Part shown: positions 13,901 through 48,863 of the stretch, one piece after another | How the letters are laid out: each line of letters opens with the position of its first letter | How positions within the stretch are numbered: position 1 is the stretch's first letter | Assembly: GCF_964204645.1 (NCBI RefSeq) | Contig: NC_134032.1 | Coordinates: forward strand, 14,310,275-14,374,274 | DNA: 64,000 nucleotides | Direction of reading: 5' to 3' | Source: Tubulanus polymorphus | Lineage: Eukaryota; Animalia; Nemertea | Program-made: the position numbers and the translations under genes | Notes under the pieces: model-generated | Database searches by the model: none | The model's input: the letters and a program-made list of their open reading frames with translations, nothing else | What the model was told of the DNA's origin: nothing

Positions 13901-16207
13901 GGTTTAAGCCACCGGTCATTGGTCTCGTCAATCCAGGGTTTATGGGTTGAAACCCTGGTGGCGACAGAGTTTCTTGGTCGAAGGTTCTTCTCTGGTCTCT
14001 CCTCCATTGAAAAAAAGAAACGTCAAACCCACTTATTATGCCCTGCGTGGCGCTTAGCGGGTTGAGGGTGTTAAAAAAAAATATTAATCTGAAAAATCAT
14101 TGAATCAGAAAAAGTTTGATGATATCAGAAAAAACCTAAAAACCCGCTATGAATAAATTGAAGATGAACATTTTTTTCCAATTTTCAGTTATTGGAAGGA
14201 AATTTTTCTAAACAAGTCAGTCATGAAGTGGATGGATTAATATTCCAACCAGTTCCTGATGTAAGTATAAACCTGCCAGTCCTAAACTTATGCATTGGTT
14301 ATATAAGTTTTTGGCACAAACATTAGAGCCACGCATGCCGCATAAGATTAACGAAGCTACAAATTCGGAATGATGAACAGACCCGTCAAGGCCCCAAACA
14401 TCTAAAACTTCAAGTTCAAGTTCAAGTTTAAATTCAGATTTGAACGGTTTAGGAATATCACGATTCGCGGATTGTATAATCTCTACTGGCGGCCGCTTCA
14501 ATCAGGTTTACAGAATTCCCGAATAGGTACAGTCGCCCCAGAAGAGAATTCCACCATCGGTAGAGATCAATCGAAACCTGTCTTATCTTTGAGCTGAAAG
14601 AGGGACTCTAAATCTCTACAATGTACGTGTATAACAAAGAAAGATAGATGTTCAGTTTTGATTTTTTTGTAGGCGTATAAATGTGGTCGGTGTTCAGCTG
14701 TATTAAAATGGAAACCGCCAGGATTAAATTCAGTCGATTTTAAACTTCAAATACGCCGTGAAACTCACCCGGGGTAAGTGAGGAAATATTCATGTATTTT
14801 CATTAAAAATCTTGATCTGGTTTTCACAGTTATGAGTTTTGACTCTTCGGTTACAAAAACATTTTTAAATGTACGACTTTGACACTAACTACAGTAATAC
14901 AAAAATACATAAAGAGATCTCTTTATGTGTCTATTCAATGATGTCATAGGGGGATTTTTGGAGGCTGCCATCTTTTCTGAAAGAGCTTGAAATCAAATTA
15001 TGAACAGATGATTTGATGATGTCATAGGGGGATTTATTTCTCGACTTTGACTCTAACTACAGTAATACCTATAGAACTGGGTCCAAGCAAATCAATGATT
15101 TCATAGGCGGATTTATGGAGGCTGCCACCTTTTATGGAAGGTTCAACAGATCTGTCATTTCATTCGGGAACTTTGATGTCATAAGCCGGATATAATTTGT
15201 TTATTTACAGTATGTTACCCGAGACTAAGGGTTATTTAATGGTTGGAAGTTTGGATCGACCATTTTCGCAAATAAAGGTATGTTGCCTCTAGATAAGAAA
15301 TCTTAGAAATATAAAGATCCAGTTCCACTGAGTTAAAGTGAACTCTGATTTAGTTAAGTCTGAGTACAATTTTAACTTTCAGGTGACGAAAGAACTTCGC
15401 GAATTCGACAACAAAATCATCGAATGTTACTGGGACGCCAGTAGCAATCAATGGAAATTCATGAGACAAAGGACGGATAAATCATTCCCAAATGGATACA
15501 ATACCGCCATGGGTCAGTGTGTCATACCTGCTCTCTCTCTTTAACTACTCTCCCTCTCATTGTCACCTACAATACCGCTATGGGTCGAGTGTATTTCACA
15601 GAAATCATTTACTGCGTACAGTCAGAGCCCCTTTTTATGCGATCATCAGGACCAAAAAAATATGGCATCATAACGTATTTGGCATTCGAATGAAGACTAT
15701 TCTAAGACCAAGTTAGTTCGATGGCCAATCTGACATACTTACATTCTTGTCTCGAACCTTTTTAACCCTTTCAGTGCTGACTAATTGATACCTTATAGTG
15801 CTGGAGATAATTTGAATATTTTGAGAAATTCCACCCTAGTGTGTTGAATAACGGGAATAGCACTATAGTGTGTCTACACCGCAGCGCAGTGTATTGTTAG
15901 TTAGTCGCAGTGCGGTGTACTAGCAAAATCCATCACCGATTCATACACTGCACTGCGGTGTAGACACACTGAAAGAGTTAAGAATTTTACCGGAAACTCG
16001 CATGAACAGGAAAATTTTAGCGTTTTGCTTGTTGTTTCAGGTGTGTGTCAAAGTATTAAGAATCCCGTTACGAAAGACATTTTGTTCACGCTGATTTCGA
16101 ATGAACGTTGGATGCCGGCGACGACGAACTCCAGTCACGGAGCCGGGCCAAGTCATACTCGATCGGATCGTGAATTAATGCCGCCACCGCCGCCCGGGCA
16201 TCACTAA
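7977..16207 (+). CDS. RNGTT: mRNA capping enzyme (RNA triphosphatase + guanylyltransferase), 15 coding exons
   Basis: Starts [20 protein letters not shown]; triphosphatase motif [11 protein letters not shown]; GFPGSQPVS; guanylyltransferase motif [10 protein letters not shown]; HEVDGLIF; LKWKP; [10 protein letters not shown]. Exons: 7977-8049, 8421-8530, 9493-9596, 9707-9795, 10704-10919, 11309-11412, 11738-11844, 12043-12144, 12869-13076, 13668-13832, 14189-14260, 14673-14773, 15211-15277, 15383-15512, 16041-16207 (TAA). Confidence 0.96.
8690..9118. mobile_element. Harbinger-type MITE family B (copies ~1975-2102, 19786-19900, 20981-21120), here interrupted by a piggyBac-type MITE
   Basis: GGCCAGTT(G/C)CA.AGTCATGGC...GACTGTGCAACTGGCC termini and internal TTAAGACCAGTC motifs. 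Confidence 0.7.
8717..9012. mobile_element. piggyBac-type MITE; copies at 15762-15981 (inverted) and 6612-6739 (degenerate)
   Basis: TTAA TSD and TIR CCCTTTCAGTGC/GCACTGAAAGGG. Confidence 0.8.
9975..10198. mobile_element. MITE family C; full copy 47180-47403, partial copies ~44060-44240 and 39510-39585
   Basis: TIR GGCTAAA(C)AAAAATGATACCTTGTTTCTCCGC; internal sequences of the copies are near-identical. Confidence 0.75.
13332..13610. repeat. 32-bp minisatellite, about 8 copies
   Basis: Unit GGTTTTATAGATCAGTTTTGATTGTGAAGYCA. Confidence 0.92.
13881..14052 (+). mobile_element. tRNA-derived SINE (copy 1)
   Basis: A box GTGGCCGAGTGG and B-box-like GGTTGAAACC. Highly similar to 59888-60057. Confidence 0.75.
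14488..14623 (+). ncRNA. Candidate intronic box H/ACA (scaRNA-like) RNA in an RNGTT intron
   Basis: Hairpin closed by GGCGGC/GTCGCC, then H box AGAAGA/AGAGAA (14540-14548), then a hairpin AGAGAT..ATCTCT with apical UGAGCUGA loop, then ACA-NNN (14618-14623). No target identified. Confidence 0.35.
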
Positions 16208-19200
16208 ACCACGTACTTTCTTAAAACGCGGACTAGTCAAGCCGTTTTACAAAAACTGGATTAATTCGAAACCCGAATAGTGGAATTATTCGATAGCAAA
16301 CAATAAAATTGCACTAAACATCATCTGGATTTAAGGATTTATGAAACAGCAAAGACTGATTGTTGGATTTACTTAGGATAAATGCATTTTATTCAGGGGG
16401 ATATCAAGCTTTACGCCGAACCATTTTAAGTTCTACTAAGAAATACCCGAAGGACACTTTATGTAAAACAAAGGTGCACTTTTGTCAAAATATTCCGCAA
16501 AAGAAGACTATTTTCTTATAAAAAAAGTATGACTATCAAAAATGTTTTTTTTTTTGGGAAAAATTCTTGAAAGGACACTATCTTAAAAAACGAAGTCCCA
16601 ATTTTGCTAAAGTTTCTCAAAAAACTCTTTGAAAGGGGACTTTTTTCTTCTTAGAAGGGTGCCTGCTGTTAGAATGCTCTTTTCTTAGTTATTTGCCCTA
16701 AAAGACTTGTTTTATTACCCCTGTTGTGTACTACATAGTGGTATTATGTTTATAGTGTTAAATGTATAACTGTATTATTGTGACTATATGGAGGAGGTCG
16801 GGCGGCCGGGGCGTGCTGGGGTCGAGTAGGTACTAACCAACTGAAAGAGAATCATTCACATTCATAGAATTAGATCACCCATTTTTGTGAAGTGATCGTT
16901 GAATCAAAGCCTGCTAAACATTTTAAACCATTCAAACCGTTTTTATCGCAATCTTTTTTTGCGTGGGACGTATGTGAAAATACTTCAGGCCATGTATATT
17001 TTTATCAGAGGTCGAAATTAAGAGTTGATCATGTTTTCTCGTAGTACAGTAAAAACATGCTTAATTCAGATCCGTGTTAAACGCAAGTTTGGAGTCAACA
17101 ATCAGAATAAGTCGAGGGTAAAATCTTCGAAGCAGGGTACGGGTGCGATTTAAGCGCTGGCCCGAGGGTATAAATTTCTGGTCGGGCCAGTAGATTCTTT
17201 ATTTCTAGAAGTCCCTCGGACCAGTGGCTATTTAAGTACTATACTATGAAAGTTATTCGATCTATGCGCAACCATCGGTTTGTTTAGGTCTCGATCCATA
17301 TTTTACATTGTGTTGGCCGCATTTCTTGGAATTGCGTGTGGAATAACGCACACCATTAAAGACAATGGAACTGGAACTAGTTTTCAGATTTTCAGAGGCT
17401 TACTCAGTGCTTGCTTGTGCATCGAATCTGAATTATCGCTGTGAATTCCTGGTTGTCATCAAATATTTTTGAATATTTTTTATACTTTCATCAGGAGACT
17501 AAAGATATTAAAGGTGATCGGTTCTGTGGTAAGCTTGATCCGGGCACGCGATAATTAGATGCAATTGACGCTGTGGCAAGTGAGCAGTCTACTGTGGGAT
17601 CATTCATACGCACAATATTTTTCAACCCTCCTCCCCTACGAAATACGCTGACCCCCTCCCCCAATGCTCAATGGCAATGCAAACCTGATAAATGAATGAC
17701 CCCTGTATCAAAATCTAGATGAATTTTTCATTTAAAAAAGTTAGTTTTAATTAGACTTTTGATTTCTGGTGAACTGAAGAAATTCATCGGTGCCTGATAA
17801 TCCGGACTAAGCCTGTTTTTACTGTATCTGAAATATTTGTGTGCCATTAACGATTTATGAATAACCATTACTACATTTTGTGTAAAAATTCCTGTCAGTG
17901 CTGTCGCCATTTGTGGAATAATGGTTATTTCGCTGAGTATTGATTATTTACCAGGAAGTTTCAGTTGTTTTTTGCGGCAGCGATTTTATTTATTTGTTGC
18001 GGAATCATGTCAATATCGTAGTAGAAAAAAATAGATTTCGAAATGAAACCAATTTTTTGTATAAAAGATATTTTGTAAATAAATGAATGATGAAAATAAA
18101 ATGATATAAATTATTATAATGATGAAATTTTGAGCTACCTTTGTTAATTTGAGGAAGAATTTGCATTTGCAACAATACCAATTTTAGTATGGGGAAAAAA
18201 ATTTCTTTTCAAAATTTCAAAAAAAAAATTTGGAAATGCCAGCCTTGTGAGCTACATAAGATTTTACAAAAAAATTTCTAAGTTTATTTCATTGCGGATC
18301 TAGGACCATTTCCAGAAAAATAAATTCTGTGCGCCCATCTCTGTTCTCACAAACGCCCATGACGCTTGTATCAAAAACATTCGGCTTTGGCCGGGCTAAC
18401 CCGGCGCTCCGCACGACGGAGCTATCCTTTCGACCCGCCTGCACTGTAGAGTAGGTGAGGCCCTGGCAGGCGAGGATGTGAATCTGATTCGCGCGATTAA
18501 GCGGATGTTGAATTGTGGTAGTTAATTACGTCATCGTTGATCGAACACTTACACGGAATCTGCGGCTTAATCCCCGTCAATTCGGTCGCGTATTTCTCGT
18601 CATACTGTGAGTATTTCCAATTCGTTTTTCCTACCGATATTTCTAACGGGTCAGTCTAGAGGGTGCGGGGTCGATTAGTCGCTTGAATCGGATTTAAAAC
18701 TCGTTTTAAACCGGGTTTGAATCGATCTCTATCGCGGACGTAATCGATTTTTCCCCGCCCATGAATCGCCGGCGCTATTTTATACGAGCCCGGCTGAAAT
18801 AGTCACCCCGTTTTCACACAGATTTTGAAGCCTAACCATCTTCTAAACGTTTGAAATCGCATCTCAATCGTCAGTTGATAATTTAGAACTGATGTACTAC
18901 TGTTTAATTTGACAAATTAGCTCAGATAGATCGAGTTCAGGTGGTAGTGCCAGTGGCAAGTGAGTAATTCAGCCATTAATATTATACATACATACACGCA
19001 TCACGCACAGCACTGCAGCAGCAGCAGTACTGATGATGATGATGATGATGCTGCAGCAGGAGATGATGCTGCTGTAGCCACTGCAAACCAATGATGTTTG
19101 TTGTGTATTTTTCACGCATTACTCATTAATGAAATAAATAAGGAGGAATTTTTTTGCTCGTTGTTGGTCGGAGATTAACTCCTGATGATCACTCTCTCAT

Positions 19201-20527
19201 CAGTCAGCGCAACAAGATGAAATTATAATTACTGATAAAACAATAATTACTGATCAGTTAATTATCTTTCTCTAGCCTCGAGTGGATTTGAGGGCGAAAG
19301 ATCACGTGATCTTTTTGCTTTTATTGGAGGTACGAGTACTGGAGTAGCGACTTCAAACAAGAAGAAAATTGCCTCATCCATAAAAAAATTTTAATCAAAA
19401 AAATTTTTTTGTGATAGTCTTCATTCCATTGAGGAGTATTAGGGGAGGGGCAAAGTGATTTTGATGTCTGTCTATAGTAATTTCACATAGGTGTAAGTTC
19501 CATGAATTGACCATTTCACCTTGCTGGTGTTTACCGGTGCAGGTTGTGGTTTGCTGATTAGTCATACGTACTGTAAAAGTCTGATGCCATCATCATCCAT
19601 CCCTCTTTGGGACGTTTTACTGTGTATAATCTGACTCAGTGCTGTTGCTGCTGCTGCTGCTGTTAGACCATCCCAGTTGATGGTGATAATTAGAATTCTA
19701 TTGATACCTGCTCTGTCACTCTCAGGATTTTTACGTGTCTTGGTTGGCATTATTTGAAAATAAAAATGGTTTGACCGTGAGTCCAGGGGCCAGTTTGCAA
19801 AGTTAAGACCAACTTATTTCTATAGCCATCTAACAACTTAAGACCAGTCTTAAGATTTAAAACCACTTTTGGACTTAAGTCATGACTGTGCAATTAGCCC
19901 CAGGGCCCAGTTAAAATTTTTGGTGTAATTGCTATGGTAACTTCATATTTCCAATGAGGACAACAATTCAAATTTAACCGTTTTAGGCTTAAACAATTTC
20001 GTGAAACTGGGCCCTGGTAAATCCAAAATTTTTTTAGTTAATGATTGTAAATAATTTAAATCGGTTCTTAATTTGGTTCTATAGCCAATCTAACAATTCA
20101 AGACCAGTCTAAGCTCATTTTGGTTCTATAACCAATCTAACAACTTAAGACCAGTCTAAGCTCATTTTAGTTCTAAACCAATCTAACAACATAAGACCAG
20201 TCTAAGCTCATTTTAGTTCTCTAACCAATCTAACAACTTAAGACCAGTCTAAACTCAATAGCTTCTTCAATAACCAATCTAGAAAACTCGAGACCAGTCT
20301 AAACTCATTTTGTCTTAGACTGGTCATTATTTCTAGAGGAGTCAGTCTAACAGTAAGACCAGGCCTCAGATTTAAGACCACTTTCGACTGTTAGTCCTTG
20401 TTGCGCAGCTTGGTGCTGCACGACAGCTTACAGACAAAATTTACTAATATATTTATCAACCTGAAACAAATATGAATTCTCTCTTTAATCATTGAATTGA
20501 ATTTTTTACAGATAAAAACGTGGGATT

Positions 20528-26359
<5,832 letters not shown>

Positions 26360-42231: not shown

Positions 42232-45200
42232 ATGACGAATACGTGCGTGAATCTAGTTTTATACTCAGTTTTGGCAGTGATTCTAATCAGCTCCGTCAAT
42301 GGCAAGAAGAAACAAGCTGAACTGCAGTCTATAGTCGAGGTGGGTCACTCATCTAGGACTACTGCAGTATTCGAACCCAGGCAGCATATTGCTAATGTCT
42401 ATTTCAACCTGACTTGAGAGCATTCCTGGTAGCCTAGCTCAGTCAGTTTTGGTAGTACATACCTGATAAAGGTCTTAGTAGGACCAGAAAGGACTGGCAG
42501 TCGATCTAAATCATCATTTTTTAATCCATTTGAAACTGTATTGAAGGATATCAAAAAAGTCTTTATTGAAAGGGGTTAATGAGAGAAAATAGACTCCATG
42601 ATTTGAAAGTTTAACAATATGTTTCCATGCCTACCAACTGAAGTTTGGTATGTAGGCATGGAAACATATTGTTAAACTTTCAGATCATGGAGTCACTTCT
42701 CTTCATTTAACCCCTTTCAGTCAAGTCTTTTTGGATATCCTTCAATACAGTTTCTATTGGATTAAAAAATGATGATTTAGGTCGACTGCCAGTCCTGTCT
42801 GGTCCTACAAAGACCTTTATCAGGTATGTACTACCAAAAATGAGCGAGCTAGGTCACCCGGAATGCTCTCAAGTCCGGTTGAAATAGACATTAGGTTATC
42901 TCTCCCAAAAAATTGATTTTAAAAAGAAAGATGATGTGGATGATTTTCTACGACGCTGTCACTTTGATCTTTTATTCTATTTCAGTTTATGCCTGAAAAA
43001 TGCTCTGAAAAGGCTGCGTCTGGGGACACGGTGGCTGTCCACTATACCGTAAGTTGCTGCATTGGTAAAGCAACAAGTCGTTTTGTCGGACTCTTATAGT
43101 TTTATGTGTTTTATTTCCGCAGGGAACGTTAGAAGCAACAGGAGCTACGTTTGATTCATCTCGTCAGCCCGGACGAGAACCGATTAAATTCACGCTCGGC
43201 AAGCAGATGGTGATTAAAGGATGGGAACTCGGAATCATGGGAATGTGTGTCGGGTACGTGAAATAGGGAAACCTTACATTACACGATAATCCAGAAAGTT
43301 TCCACTAAAAACCAATCGGCTTAGTGGAAACTTTCTGTTGTTTCAATCTGGGTTTTTACAGATTAGAGGAAATCAAGGAATTTCAAATTTATTATTTGCC
43401 TGCACAGAATAGCAGGGAATCGGGCTCTCCTTGAAAATCAGGGAAACATATTATAAGTGTTTGAATTTTTGGTGTCTTGTTGTTTTTGCTGGTGACGAGT
43501 GTCACAAGGAACCTCTTGATAAAGAAACAGCCCTCACTGAGGATATCTTATAATTTAATCAGGGAATTTGAATTTTTGGTGTCTTGTTCTTGCTTGTGAC
43601 GAGTGACACAAGGAACCTTTTTATAAGAAAGAGCGTTCACTGAGGATATCTTATAATTTAATCGGGGAATTTTTGGTCAAGGTTTAGTCAAGTCGGGGAA
43701 ATATCATGCAGTTTGTTTGGTAAATTTTGTAAAAAAGCATTTTTCCCCTTTCATTTTTTCCAGTGAGAAAAGAAAACTGATAATTCCACATCATTTAGCA
43801 TATGGTGTTGAAGGTCGCCCGCCAGTTATACCGGGTAAGGGTAGAAAGTGAAAAACAATTTACTTAATTTGCATTTTCTTGGCTTCGGTGTCAGTTTCAC
43901 AGTTCCGCGTCGTTTGAGGCAAAAAATGTTAAGTCAATCTTTTAACTAAAAAGGAAAAAAAATGTGTCCGAAAATTTTCCTGGAGTTTTTATAGGCCTAA
44001 TGTTGACTTCTTGAGAGCTATCGTCAGTATTCCTACATAGCCTATGATTTATGGCTAAGGCTAAAAAAGATGATACGTTGTTTCTCCTAATCGGCCAGGT
44101 CACTTTTGTAAATTATGAAATTTGTAATCAGTTCACTTTTATAGCTGCTGGGTCTGTTATTGTTAGCCTGATCAGGATTTTGCAAAACTTATCTACTGGG
44201 TAGATAGGCGGCCAGGTTAACCTTAAAGCTCAGCAGACTTTGGACTCCATTTTGCTTTCGTGCTATTTCATCCTTGGTTTAAACTACTCAAAACTGCGTC
44301 AGCTGTGTAACTAACCGGGGATATTTTAGAATCGCTTGTGTTGTGTCTGCTTAAACAATCCCTGAATGGTTCAGTGGAACTTTTATGCTTTTTCGATTTC
44401 AATTTAAGCCGAAGCCACCCTTATATTTGAAACTGAACTAATGTCCATCAAACGTGGATCGAAAAACTCCGAACTTTAGATGGACTCAAATTTGAAATAA
44501 ATATTTCGATTCTAGAATCAGGTGTTTTATTTTATTTGTTGCCTGGGTGACGGTATTTTATTTGCTTTTGTTGACATAGCAGTTTGTTCCCCTTCACCAA
44601 ATTTCGTGTAATGAACTCGATTTAGAACTGTGGAACTGGATACAGAACTTGGGAACCGTTCAATAACTGTGGAACTGGCTCCAGTAACTGTGGGACTGAA
44701 TCCTTAACTGTGGAACTGGATTCAGTAACTACTGGGTAACGAACCAGATCCCAAACTGCAGAACTGGGTCCTCGGAACTGTGGAACTGGGTTCACAGTTC
44801 TGTGGAACTGGTTCCAGTAACTATGGAAATGGGTCCAGTAACTATGGAAATGGGTCCAGTAACTATGGAAATGGGTCCAGTAACTGTCGAACTGGGTTCA
44901 CATTTCTGTGAAACTGGTTCCAGTAACTGTCGAACTGGGTTCACATTTCTGTGGAACTGGTTCCAGTAACTATGGAAATGGGTCCAATAACTGTCGAACT
45001 GGGTTCACAGAACTGTGGAACTGGGTTCACAGTTCTGTGGAACTGGTTCCAGTCACTATGGAACTGGGTCCAGTAACTGTATCTGGGTTCAGTAACTATG
45101 GAACTGGGTCCAGTAACTGTATCTGGGTTCAGTAACTATGGAACTGGGTCCAGTAACTGTATCTGGGTTCAGTAACTGTGGAACTGGGTTCACAGTTCTG

Positions 45201-46221
45201 TGGAACTGGTTCCAGTCACTATGGAACTGGGTCCAGTAACTGTATCTGGGTTCAGTTACTATGGAACTGGGTCCAGTAACTGTATTTGGGTTCAGTAACT
45301 ATGGAACTGGTCCAGTAACTGTATCTGGGTTCAGTAACTGTGGAACTGGTCCAGTAACTATATCTGGGTTCAGTAACTGTGGAACTGGGTCCAGTAACTG
45401 TATCTGGGTTGAGTAACTATGGAACTGGGTCCAGTAACTGTATCTGGGTTCAGTAACTGTGGAACTGGGTTCACAGTTCTGTGGAACTGGTTCCAGTCAC
45501 TATGGAACTGGGTCCAGTAACTGTATCTGGGTTCAGTAACTGTGGAACTGGGTTCACAGTTCTGTGGAACTGGTTCCAGTCACTATGGAACTGGGTCCAG
45601 TAACTGTATCTGGGTTCAGTTACTATGGAACTGGGTCCAGTAACTGTATTTGGGTTCAGTAACTATGGAACTGGTCCAGTAACTGTATCTGGGTTCAGTA
45701 ACTGTGGAACTGGTCCAGTAACTATATCTGGGTTCAGTAACTGTGGAACTGGGTCCAGTAACTGTATCTGGGTTCAGTCACTATGGAACTGGGTCCAGTA
45801 ACTGTATCTGGGTTCAGTAACTGTGGAACTGGGTCCAGTAACTGTATCTGGGTTCAGTAACTGTGGAACTGGTCCAGTAACTGTATCTGGGTTCAGTAAC
45901 TATGGAACTGGTCCAGTAACTGTATCTGGGTTCAGTAACTGTGGAACTGGGTTCAGTAATGATTAACTTTTCATTGATTAGTTTTCAATTTGTATTTAAT
46001 CTCTGTCTCTCGTAGGTGAAGCGACGTTAGTTTTCGATACCGAGTTGATATCGATAGCTCGTGAGCCGGCGTTAACGACCGATAGTCTCGGTCGGGTCGC
46101 CGGGTTTATCTTCGTGCCGATGATCGTCGGCGTCGTGCTCTATCATCTCTACCGTAAAATCACCAATTCACCGTCGAAAAAAGATCTGAAAGAAGAACGA
46201 CGAAAAAAGAAGAGGAAATAA
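42232..46221 (+). CDS. ER FKBP-type peptidyl-prolyl isomerase, FKBP11-like membrane isoform
   Basis: Signal peptide [73 protein letters not shown]..IP. Exons: 42232-42339, 42986-43048, 43123-43253, 43764-43834, 46016-46221. The last exon encodes a TM segment and ends KKDLKEERRKKKRK*. Confidence 0.92.
42392..42894. mobile_element. Foldback element / ~500-bp palindrome in FKBP intron 1
   Basis: Arms of ~240 bp (CTAATGTCTATTTCAACC...GGTTGAAATAGACATTAG) around a ~17-nt loop. Confidence 0.85.
43455..43670. repeat. Dispersed ~110-bp repeat family in short tandem runs; also 25960-26150 and inverted 56460-56770
   Basis: GAATTTTTGGTGTCTTGTT..GGAACCTCTTGATAAGAAACAG..CACTGAGGATATCTTATAA. Confidence 0.8.
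44409..44479 (+). CDS. Alternative terminal exon of the FKBP gene (soluble isoform ending KNSEL)
   Basis: Pyrimidine tract plus AG at 44407-44408, in phase with exon 4. Reads AEATLIFETELMSIKRGSKNSEL*. AATAAA at 44496-44501 is followed by a GT/T-rich tract. Confidence 0.78.
44625..45958. repeat. ~20-bp degenerate minisatellite between the two FKBP terminal exons; same family inverted at 10960-11090
   Basis: GTAACTRTGGAACTGGGTCCA and GTAACTGTATCTGGGTTCA units. Confidence 0.92.
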
Positions 46222-48863
46222 AGAGACGTTCGCGGAACGTGACGGAACGGAGGGAGAACTAGTCATTTTATAAAAAATCGGGGGTAAATCCAGGGTGGTT
46301 TATAACTAATTATCGTTACTTATATGTCATTATGCTCGATAGGTGCTGCCATCTTCAAATAGTGATAAAAACTAATTACTAATAGCATTGATACACAGCG
46401 ATGCGGCGTACTAGCGAATTTCATCACTGATTTAAACACTGCATTGCGGTGTAGATGAAGAAAGGGTTGATGAGACTTGTAAAACCCTTTACAATTTTAA
46501 GTCCCCAATTTATATTTGAAGGCATTAGTTAATCAAAAATGACCTAAATCATGTTTAGTTGTCGAAATTTCTTTTGGTGTTTTTGACATAAAGGGACTTT
46601 AAATAGGCTCTCTATAACTTGAGTTTGTTTTAGGCAACATTTGTCAAAAATTGTGGATTTCTTTTCCTGTCAAAAGGTCGTTACTAACAGAATGCCCTTC
46701 ATTATGTTATGTTTGCTTTGAAAAACCCTCTGATCATGCCCCTTGTATCTACCCTTGATAACAGAAGATTTTATTATTTTTTGGATAGAATCAGGGAGTT
46801 TATTATCATTACTCAGAACCATGCTTTATTCAAGATTTAAAAACTCGTTACGACTGGTAGGATGGGCTGGAAATGATACAACACAGTGGAACCTATCGGT
46901 TATAACAAACCTAGAATTTTGTTTTCTGAGGTTGCTTGTGACAAGAAGGTTTCACTTTTAAATTCGCACAATTTCTAAAATGGGAATTATTCGTAGATGG
47001 ATTAACTTGTTTATATCCGAATCATAGATAACTTCGGTAATTTGAAGAATCCTGCTGCTGATACTTTTTATCTCATCCTAGAGGTCCCAGTTCCACAATT
47101 TCAGAGTCAAATTTCAAGCCGAGAAAAAATGATTCAAAAACCGTACTTTATTTATTCTGTCTCTCTTAAAATCGATTTAATGCTAAACAAAAATGATACC
47201 TTGTTTCTCCGCAGCGGCCGGGTCATTTTTGTAAAATATGATAAATTTTGTAAACAGTTCATTTCTATAGCGGCCGGGTCTGTTATGGTGAAATTGATCA
47301 CGATTTAAAAAAAAGTAATGTATAGGGTAGATAGGCAGCCGGCCGGGTCAACATTTAAGCTCAGCAGAGCGCAGAAACAAGGTATCAATTTTTTTTAGCC
47401 TAAAGAGTTAACGCTATTTGAGGTTAAATTTCATCCAAAGTTGACGCTGATGTCGGTAATAATTCACCGAATGACGTTTGTTTTTCTTCCTTTTCTTTGT
47501 TTTTGACGAAATTGAAGTAACGCTGCAACGTATTAGAACCTAATTAGATCCATTTAAAACTTTGATACTCTGGGGTCGGTTTTACAGACTGGTATTACCT
47601 TAAACCCGGGGGCTAACTTAGTTCATTATTAAATGAGTTAGCCCACAGGTTAAAGGTCGTAATACCACTCTATAAAACCGGGCCCTGGATGATATTCGAG
47701 CAATTACTTGTTGTACGCGAAAGCTTACAAGTAAGTGCTTGAATTTAAATCCGGGATAGATGAATCTATATCAATCAAAAATTGTTTCCAACACGTCTGA
47801 GAAGTTATTCATTTCGTCTCATGGTTTACCACTACTAGTAGTGAAAGATTAACCCTGAACTGTGGAACTGGCTCCATCATCATCATCATCATCATTATCA
47901 TAGTTGCCATCATCATCTGTAAGAAATGTTATGCAAAAATTATTTTGGGTGTTTGTGTGAGTTTGTAAATAAGATATCAAATGTCTCAATATTGAAAGTC
48001 GATTGAGTCGATCAATTAACTTGTTAATTAAGCGGTTAACCCGTTAATTAAGTAATTAACTAGTGTATTAAGAAATTTATCATGAATTTGATTGACAGTA
48101 GTAATCAGTAAGATGGATGATTTTCGCGAAGTGAAACAATTTTAAAGATTTAAATATAGGATGGGTGATTTGTTTGTAGAAAGTGGTGTTTTTGAAACGT
48201 GTTTGTTATATATAACCATTGATTAATTATGATATTGTGCAATTATCAACATCAATTGTTTTTCATATTTGATGAATTTTGATGATAAACATTCCAGAAA
48301 AAAAAACATGTTTTTATCAAATAATGGAAATGAATTTGTTTCAAATGTTTCTCGTCTCCGGAACTGGGCGTCTATGATGTACCAGTACTAAATCTCTAGA
48401 AAACAGGGGGTTTTGGTCCACTGATTGAAGGAACTAGGCCTCCATTCTCTACAAGGGCTTCATATCCGGAACTAGGTCAGAGTTAGATAGAGGGTGTCCC
48501 GGGTTCGAATCCAGTAATTACTGACACTGATTCAGAGTTGTCGATGCCGAATAGAGGATGTGCAGGGGTGTCGCGGGTTCGAACCCAGTTATTACTGACA
48601 CTGATTCAGAGTGGTCCTGATGCTATATAGAGGATGTGCAGGATTTAGAGTGGTCCTGATGCTGAATAGAGGATGTACATTGGTGTCCCGGGTACGAATT
48701 CAGAGTCTGAATTGACAATGAACAAGGGGGTGTCCCGGGTTCGAACAATTACTGGTCCCTAGTAAACGATGTACAGTGGTGTCCCAGGTTCGAACCTAGT
48801 AATTACTGATATTGATTCAGAGTGTGGGTCCTGATGCTGAATAGATGATGTACTGCAGTCCCG

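Follow-up and report, generated by a model that had tools for sequence, protein, structure and literature searches.

Can a single gene supply both a membrane-anchored and a soluble form of the same enzyme by ending in one or the other of two last exons? The question is raised by an FKBP gene located in a 64,000-nt stretch of the palaeonemertean ribbon worm Tubulanus polymorphus (contig NC_134032.1, positions 14,310,275 to 14,374,274 of the forward strand; "the window" in what follows). Because the lengths of its first four exons are 108+63+131+71 nt, exon 4 ends in phase 1, and its frame is continued by two downstream exons, A and B, each of which opens with the last FKBP beta-strand. An earlier note on this DNA had proposed that exon A yields a soluble protein kept in the endoplasmic reticulum (ER) by an xxEL end, and exon B a membrane protein with a di-lysine end. 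The main product of the gene is, as predicted from its sequence, a type I ER membrane protein made of a signal peptide, a luminal FKBP prolyl-isomerase domain, a helix and a KKRK tail, and it results from splicing of exon 4 to exon B. As for exon A, its codon-position pattern and the signals that surround it lead us to view it as a candidate alternative terminal exon, minor or condition-specific. That it is currently used as such we consider an even bet.

Use of exon B was observed in one of four sequencing runs that could be placed on the gene. None of the runs is recorded as RNA; three of them (X1-X3) behave as DNA and one (X4) as RNA. The run data consist of contigs, which drop rare variants and show presence but not absence. 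Contig 25 of X4 (1568 nt, depth 418.5) joins exons 1-2-3-4-B through four joints, all of them GT..AG (42337>42984, 43048>43123, 43252>43763 and 43833>46015), and extends around 1 kb into the 3' untranslated region (UTR). Positions 311-1196 of the contig correspond to 46015-46900, 310 further letters extend past 46900, and the poly(A) site of the exon B transcript lies beyond ~47210. X4 was taken as RNA because it contains a spliced contig, because its depth is zero in the unique intron bin 43871-44031, and because the spliced joints are missing from DNA runs X1-X3. The possibility that contig 25 derives from a retrocopy is ruled out, as exon 3 and exon B each occur only once in the assembly. 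Exon B is therefore the constitutive, dominant last exon. Its junction with exon 4 had been anticipated in the earlier note (as 43834->46016), and the RefSeq protein described below agrees with it.

Two features of the ends of contig 25 deserve mention. Its 5' end coincides with the first base of the start codon (42232), so that no 5' UTR was recovered, and there is no AG just upstream of 42232 that would make it an obvious splice acceptor. At the other end of the gene, an AATAAA hexamer (46217-46222) overlaps the stop codon of exon B. Because the RNA contig reads through it and continues for ~1 kb, this hexamer is either not the sole poly(A) signal or is unused.

The identity of the gene was established from its protein product and from its relatives. 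A RefSeq protein of T. polymorphus (LOC141909986, P0071) equals exons 1-4 plus B with a 100% match: residues 1-36, 58-101 and 125-192 correspond to exons 1, 3 and B, each at 100%, while exons 2 and 4 match save at the ends of the alignment, where it overruns the splice sites into the intron. RefSeq thus annotates the exon B form. P0071 bears no isoform label, which suggests that a single transcript is annotated. Homologues were reached through a library search with exon B, which led to protein P0002, and through word searches with P0002 and P0071; all queries were single exons or database proteins. Exact look-up of P0071 and of P0030 gave no match. Exon 3 alone matches Pfam family PF00254 (FKBP_C) with E=2.5e-10 and 41 bits, above the 21.1-bit cut-off, at profile positions 17-57; exon 4 covers profile positions 59-82 with 20.1 bits, slightly below the cut-off, and P0071 also carries PF00254, which places the protein among the FKBP-type peptidyl-prolyl isomerases.

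Within this family, the tail encoded by exon B is the informative element. The strand shared by exons A and B, of the type ATLxFxxEL, is also present in relatives of both FKBP2 and FKBP11. The library search with exon B returned last-exon fragments and full-length FKBP11-like proteins from many animals, one of them with the vertebrate FKBP11 tail, and the exon B tail ...SKKDLKEERRKKKRK matches the tails of FKBP11 or FKBP11-like proteins from reptiles, amphioxus, a brachiopod, molluscs and echinoderms. A motif (S/T)KK(D/E)LKEE(R/K)..K is common to the proteins of Tubulanus, gecko (FKBP11; P0152 and P0183), amphioxus, Lingula, mollusc and holothurian. FKBP11 (also known as FKBP19) of vertebrates and the FKBP11-like proteins of invertebrates also share an architecture in which a signal peptide and a single FKBP domain are followed by one membrane helix and a lysine-rich tail in the cytosol, and the Tubulanus protein displays each of these traits, with KK(D/E)LKEE in its tail. 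The phase-1 intron that follows ...IPG is found in Lineus, Lingula and Holothuria as well. The gene is single-copy in the 268-Mb assembly. Because of the shared tail motif and the overall architecture, the locus can be identified by sequence as the single-copy FKBP11 ortholog of T. polymorphus.

The gene model is presented in Table 1. Translation exon by exon reproduced the coordinates of the earlier note to the base, and its description of exon A, with a weak AAG acceptor and an AATAAA hexamer 17 nt after the stop codon, was likewise accurate. The hydrophobic core of exon 1 has a Kyte-Doolittle mean of 2.19. The translation of exon B opens with EATLVFDTELISI, followed by a linker, the hydrophobic helix and the end ...KKDLKEERRKKKRK. 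No hydrophobic 19-mer resembling that of exon B was detected in exon A by a Kyte-Doolittle scan. When the last-strand motif was searched for across the whole 64-kb window, only exons A and B and two unrelated frames were found. The interval between exons A and B is occupied for the most part by a minisatellite of 1.3 kb, and the contigs of the DNA runs fragment there.

Table 1. Coordinates of the features of the Tubulanus FKBP11 gene, as positions in the window.
Feature	Position	Strand	Description
Exon 1, coding part	42232..42339	+	108 nt; start codon and predicted signal peptide (24 residues, then KKK...)
Exon 2	42986..43048	+	63 nt; FKBP domain begins here
Exon 3	43123..43253	+	131 nt; FKBP domain core
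Exon 4	43764..43834	+	71 nt; ends ...RPPVIPG; donor common to both last exons
Exon A	44409..44479	+	AAG acceptor; (A)EATLIFETELMSIKRGSKNSEL, stop; last FKBP beta-strand, KRGSKNSEL and stop; no membrane helix
AATAAA	44496..44501	+	17 nt past exon A stop; T/GT-rich stretch downstream, ~44521-44541
Minisatellite	44626..45959	.	21/40-nt units, ~65 copies (Tandem Repeats Finder); fills most of exon A-B interval
Exon B, coding part	46016..46221	+	TAG acceptor; (G)EATLVFDTELISIAREP...KKDLKEERRKKKRK, stop; strand, linker, helix, lysine-rich tail
Exon B membrane helix	46096-46152	+	hydrophobic 19-mer, Kyte-Doolittle mean 2.04
KKRK end of exon B tail	46207-46218	+	stop follows
3' UTR of exon B transcript	46222..46900	+	runs on ~310 nt beyond 46900, to ~47210

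The relationship between the two last exons was examined codon by codon. Over the 13 codons that exons A and B share, 10 residues are identical (10/13), and identity at the first, second and third codon positions is 10/13, 13/13 and 1/13, respectively. Expressed as substitutions, there are 11 synonymous differences (Sd) on 9 synonymous sites and 4 non-synonymous differences (Nd) on 30 non-synonymous sites, a distribution with p=4e-7 in Fisher's test. The DNA that flanks the two exons does not align, and a recent segmental duplication was rejected on these grounds. The pattern indicates that the A/B duplication is old, and that the path between the copies has been dominated by constraint at the protein level. 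Along with the translations, it bears out two proposals of the earlier note: that the two last exons are paralogous and usable only one at a time, and that both have been under selection. A long neutral decay of exon A seems unlikely given that second positions are intact (13/13) and third positions are not (1/13). In a simulation of neutral drift, at least 10 of the 13 residues were kept with no stop codon in 40% of the cases at 0.15 substitutions per site, in 2.5% at 0.35 and in 0.3% at 0.5. Exon A must therefore have worked as a coding exon during nearly all its history, though a recent disuse is compatible with the data. CpG content proved uninformative as the genome is not CpG-depleted (observed/expected, 0.96).

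The surroundings of exon A are consistent with a terminal exon. Its frame of 23 codons is in the correct phase, its AG acceptor is preceded by a T-rich tract, and the hexamer at 44496 is one of only two AATAAA/ATTAAA hexamers in the 3 kb from 44400 to 47400. Exon A is also the sole copy of its sequence in the genome. A tentative mechanism can be outlined from these signals and from the codon-position pattern. Exon A would be an old, lineage-specific paralogous copy of the beginning of the last exon, held under protein-coding constraint. Exon 4 would be spliced to its weak AAG acceptor and the transcript would be cleaved after the nearby AATAAA, giving rise to a product of ~147 residues with a complete FKBP domain, devoid of anchor and ending in KNSEL. 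This end might act as a weak signal for the KDEL receptor, or else the protein might be secreted. The choice between A and B would depend on how well a weak proximal acceptor, together with its poly(A) site, competes against the strong acceptor of the distal exon; in the animal sampled, the distal exon B wins almost completely.

The two ends would then make use of different retrieval systems. The end of the exon B product, KKRK behind a membrane helix, fits by sequence the KKXX di-lysine pattern for retrieval by COPI, defined by lysines at positions -3 and -4 (or -3 and -5) of a cytosolic C-terminus. The tail of the exon B product presumably lies in the cytosol, and the membrane form with a di-lysine end that the earlier note had described is borne out by the helix (mean 2.04) and by KKRK. 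The ER-retention role that the note had attributed to the xxEL end of the exon A product is weakened. Reporter tests in human cells have shown that, at position -4, N does as well as K, R or H, and that position -3 tolerates any residue except proline when residues are tested singly (Raykhel et al., PMC2140024). NSEL fails the PROSITE pattern considered below, and only from these single-position tests is it plausible as a weak KDEL-receptor signal.

A distinct FKBP2 ortholog of the worm is present on contig C1 (G000:C1 ~6831000, minus strand; L004:1365-2061). It encodes a signal peptide, and its last exon ends in GATLIFEVELIKIERRDEL, with the canonical RDEL as part of the C-terminus ERRDEL. 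The contrast with vertebrates drawn in the earlier note, in which one worm gene would do the work of two, consequently fails: since a separate FKBP2 exists, the worm has the same two genes as vertebrates, and exon A would add a third product rather than replace a missing gene. FKBP2 (FKBP13; the human protein ends in RTEL and is located in the ER, PMC2140024) and the predicted isoform A would be built alike: a signal peptide, then an FKBP domain, then a short tail with EL at its end. They differ, however, in that exon A belongs to the FKBP11 type and sides with exon B rather than with the last exon of FKBP2, as second codon positions are identical in 13/13 cases with exon B and in 10/13 with the last exon of the worm FKBP2. 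The idea that exon A derives from the last exon of FKBP2 was rejected on this basis; nor do the third positions point to a recent copying event. By sequence comparison, Tubulanus FKBP11 is distinct from the FKBP2 lineage.

To compare the last exons across species, orthologous loci were fetched via database proteins and scanned in all frames for the last-strand motif; Lineus was the only other nemertean to turn up in the word searches. A single last exon was found in Lineus longissimus (L026, where the last intron is ~265 nt), Lingula (L028), Branchiostoma (L029) and Haliotis (L030). Unlike these FKBP11 loci, that of Tubulanus has an extra, anchor-less copy of the last exon upstream. A different situation was encountered in the holothurian Holothuria leucospilota, whose FKBP11-like gene (L027) has two tandem last exons (18307-18516 and 23416-23646), both of which open, in phase 1, with the strand. 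Of these, the proximal exon encodes the canonical FKBP11 tail and is part of one uninterrupted frame of 185 residues in Logan contig L031, which we read as a transcript. The distal one encodes a divergent helix and a KKKK end, and is found in NCBI protein P0013; a protein of the distal type from Apostichopus is labelled isoform X1. Mutually exclusive last exons that arose by duplication thus do exist among the members of this family. The exon layout is alike in Holothuria and Tubulanus, with tandem last exons that start with the last beta-strand in phase 1. In Holothuria, however, each last exon brings its own membrane helix and lysine tail, so that the choice alters the anchor without removing it, and the canonical FKBP11 tail is in the proximal exon rather than in the distal one as in Tubulanus. 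No report of alternative last exons in FKBP11 or FKBP2 was found in a literature search. A tandem array of partial exon-3-like copies (..PIAFVLGSHQIIPG..) was also detected in an intron of the FKBP11-like gene of Haliotis rufescens (L030:13344-13713).

Several observations weigh against the current use of exon A. In the X4 contigs, depth is 0 in the bin that contains exon A and its AATAAA (44354-44514), compared with 418 on exon B; only one of the two expected last-exon junctions is seen in RNA (43833>46015), and the other one anticipated by the earlier note (43834->44409) is not. Hence, exon A does not give a major form in the animal sampled. Assemblers are likely to clip a short dead-end branch of low relative depth, and because contigs drop rare variants a minor isoform A is compatible with zero depth. 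No protein of the isoform A type (~147 residues, ending in NSEL) appeared among the proteins of the word searches with P0002 and P0071. A further point is the weakness of the AAG acceptor; the nearest other AG, a CAG located 34 nt upstream (ending at 44374), is out of frame. The earlier note had suggested looking for exon A in other genomes: the all-frame motif scan did not find it at the orthologous locus in Lineus, Lingula, Branchiostoma or Haliotis, and for this reason it is regarded as lineage-specific. Lastly, a soluble FKBP2 ending in RDEL is already in the genome. Such observations (depth zero, a single protein on record, a weak acceptor, absence in four other species and a separate FKBP2 that supplies the soluble luminal FKBP) would be accommodated if exon A were a relic. 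It might be the former terminal exon of FKBP11, or that of an FKBP11-like tandem duplicate which has otherwise been lost by deletion of its exons; after its recent disuse only the membrane form would be made, and exon A would be a piece of intron that decay has yet to erase. The simulation permits recent neutrality, given that, with 0.15 substitutions per site, 40% of the neutral copies retain 10 or more of the 13 residues. Such a history is a serious possibility, to which we grant somewhat less than an even chance. Its difficulty lies in timing: with third positions saturated (1/13) and second positions untouched (13/13), a narrow time window is needed to catch exon A just after its loss. Nor is there any damage to its phase, stop codon, T-rich tract or neighbouring AATAAA.

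The C-terminus of the exon A product admits more than one explanation too. NSEL fails the PROSITE pattern [KRHQSA]-[DENQ]-E-L, as both N at -4 and S at -3 fall outside it, and NSEL is not among the terms found in PMC2140024, so that the combination of N at -4 and S at -3 rests on single-position tests; these points also count against an ER-retained isoform A. If NSEL were non-functional for retrieval, exon A might be used and its product secreted, and the gene would alternate between making a membrane enzyme of the ER and making an FKBP for export, as might happen in gland or mucus cells. A related end, QSEL, sent a reporter to the Golgi, though AGR3 itself is in the ER, and several ends that match the motif were retained poorly (PMC2140024). 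The worm FKBP2, moreover, has the canonical RDEL. However, EL at positions -2 and -1 weighs most for receptor binding (review, PMC9220330), N at -4 and a non-proline residue at -3 each worked singly (PMC2140024), and no expression of exon A was seen in the X4 contigs. Use of exon A with a secreted product is an alternative worth keeping in view, though we regard it as improbable. Still harder to sustain is the view that the likeness of exon A to the last FKBP strand is a coincidence, created by a chance open frame in an intron. The exon has only 23 codons and, being too short, gives no Pfam match on its own. Yet 10/13 of its residues are shared with exon B, all second codon positions are identical, the phase is right, the frame begins directly behind an AG, and the strand motif has no other matches in the 64-kb window than exons A and B and the two unrelated frames. 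The codon-position pattern effectively refutes a chance origin, which we deem extremely improbable.

The heavy chain of IgM is the textbook example of a secreted/membrane switch by alternative terminal exon and poly(A) site. There, a proximal end with its own stop codon and poly(A) signal gives the soluble product and a distal splice adds the anchor, and the arrangement of exons A and B would be alike. One difference is that the secreted tail of IgM continues the last constant-region exon, with no duplicated exon involved. Another is that the proximal choice has not been observed in the RNA of Tubulanus (X4 contigs).

Should exon A be in use, one gene would deliver its prolyl isomerase domain in two states, bound to the ER membrane or soluble in the lumen or secretory pathway, and the two forms would depend on two retrieval systems, COPI di-lysine and KDEL receptor. 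The locus would then be a compact natural experiment on what the anchoring of ER FKBPs is for. Should it instead be a relic, the gene is an ordinary FKBP11 in which a dead exon has been well preserved. In both cases, the feature is modest and lineage-restricted, and does not represent a new kind of system. The holothurian case indicates that duplication of the last exon is not a one-off in this gene family. One may speculate that, by means of terminal exons duplicated long ago, a single FKBP11 gene gives rise to a membrane enzyme retrieved by COPI as well as to an enzyme without anchor, luminal or secreted, and that such duplication is recurrent, has occurred independently in nemerteans and holothurians, and diversifies anchoring and retention. 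As a whole, this broader proposal is rather unlikely.

Repeated sequences were also noticed in and around the gene. Intron 1 contains a foldback element, similar to a miniature inverted-repeat transposable element (MITE), at 42420-42850 of the window. Its family has a very high copy number, with word depths of 17,000-46,000 in the DNA run X1, and copies are also present in the RNA-like run X4. In intron 3, a 103-nt unit occurs in two copies (43460-43672) and is likewise a member of a high-copy family, with a depth of ~15,000-23,000 in X1. One repeat family is represented here by two copies: one in intron 4, upstream of exon A (~44060-44240), and another at ~47190-47380, where the exon B RNA contig stops.

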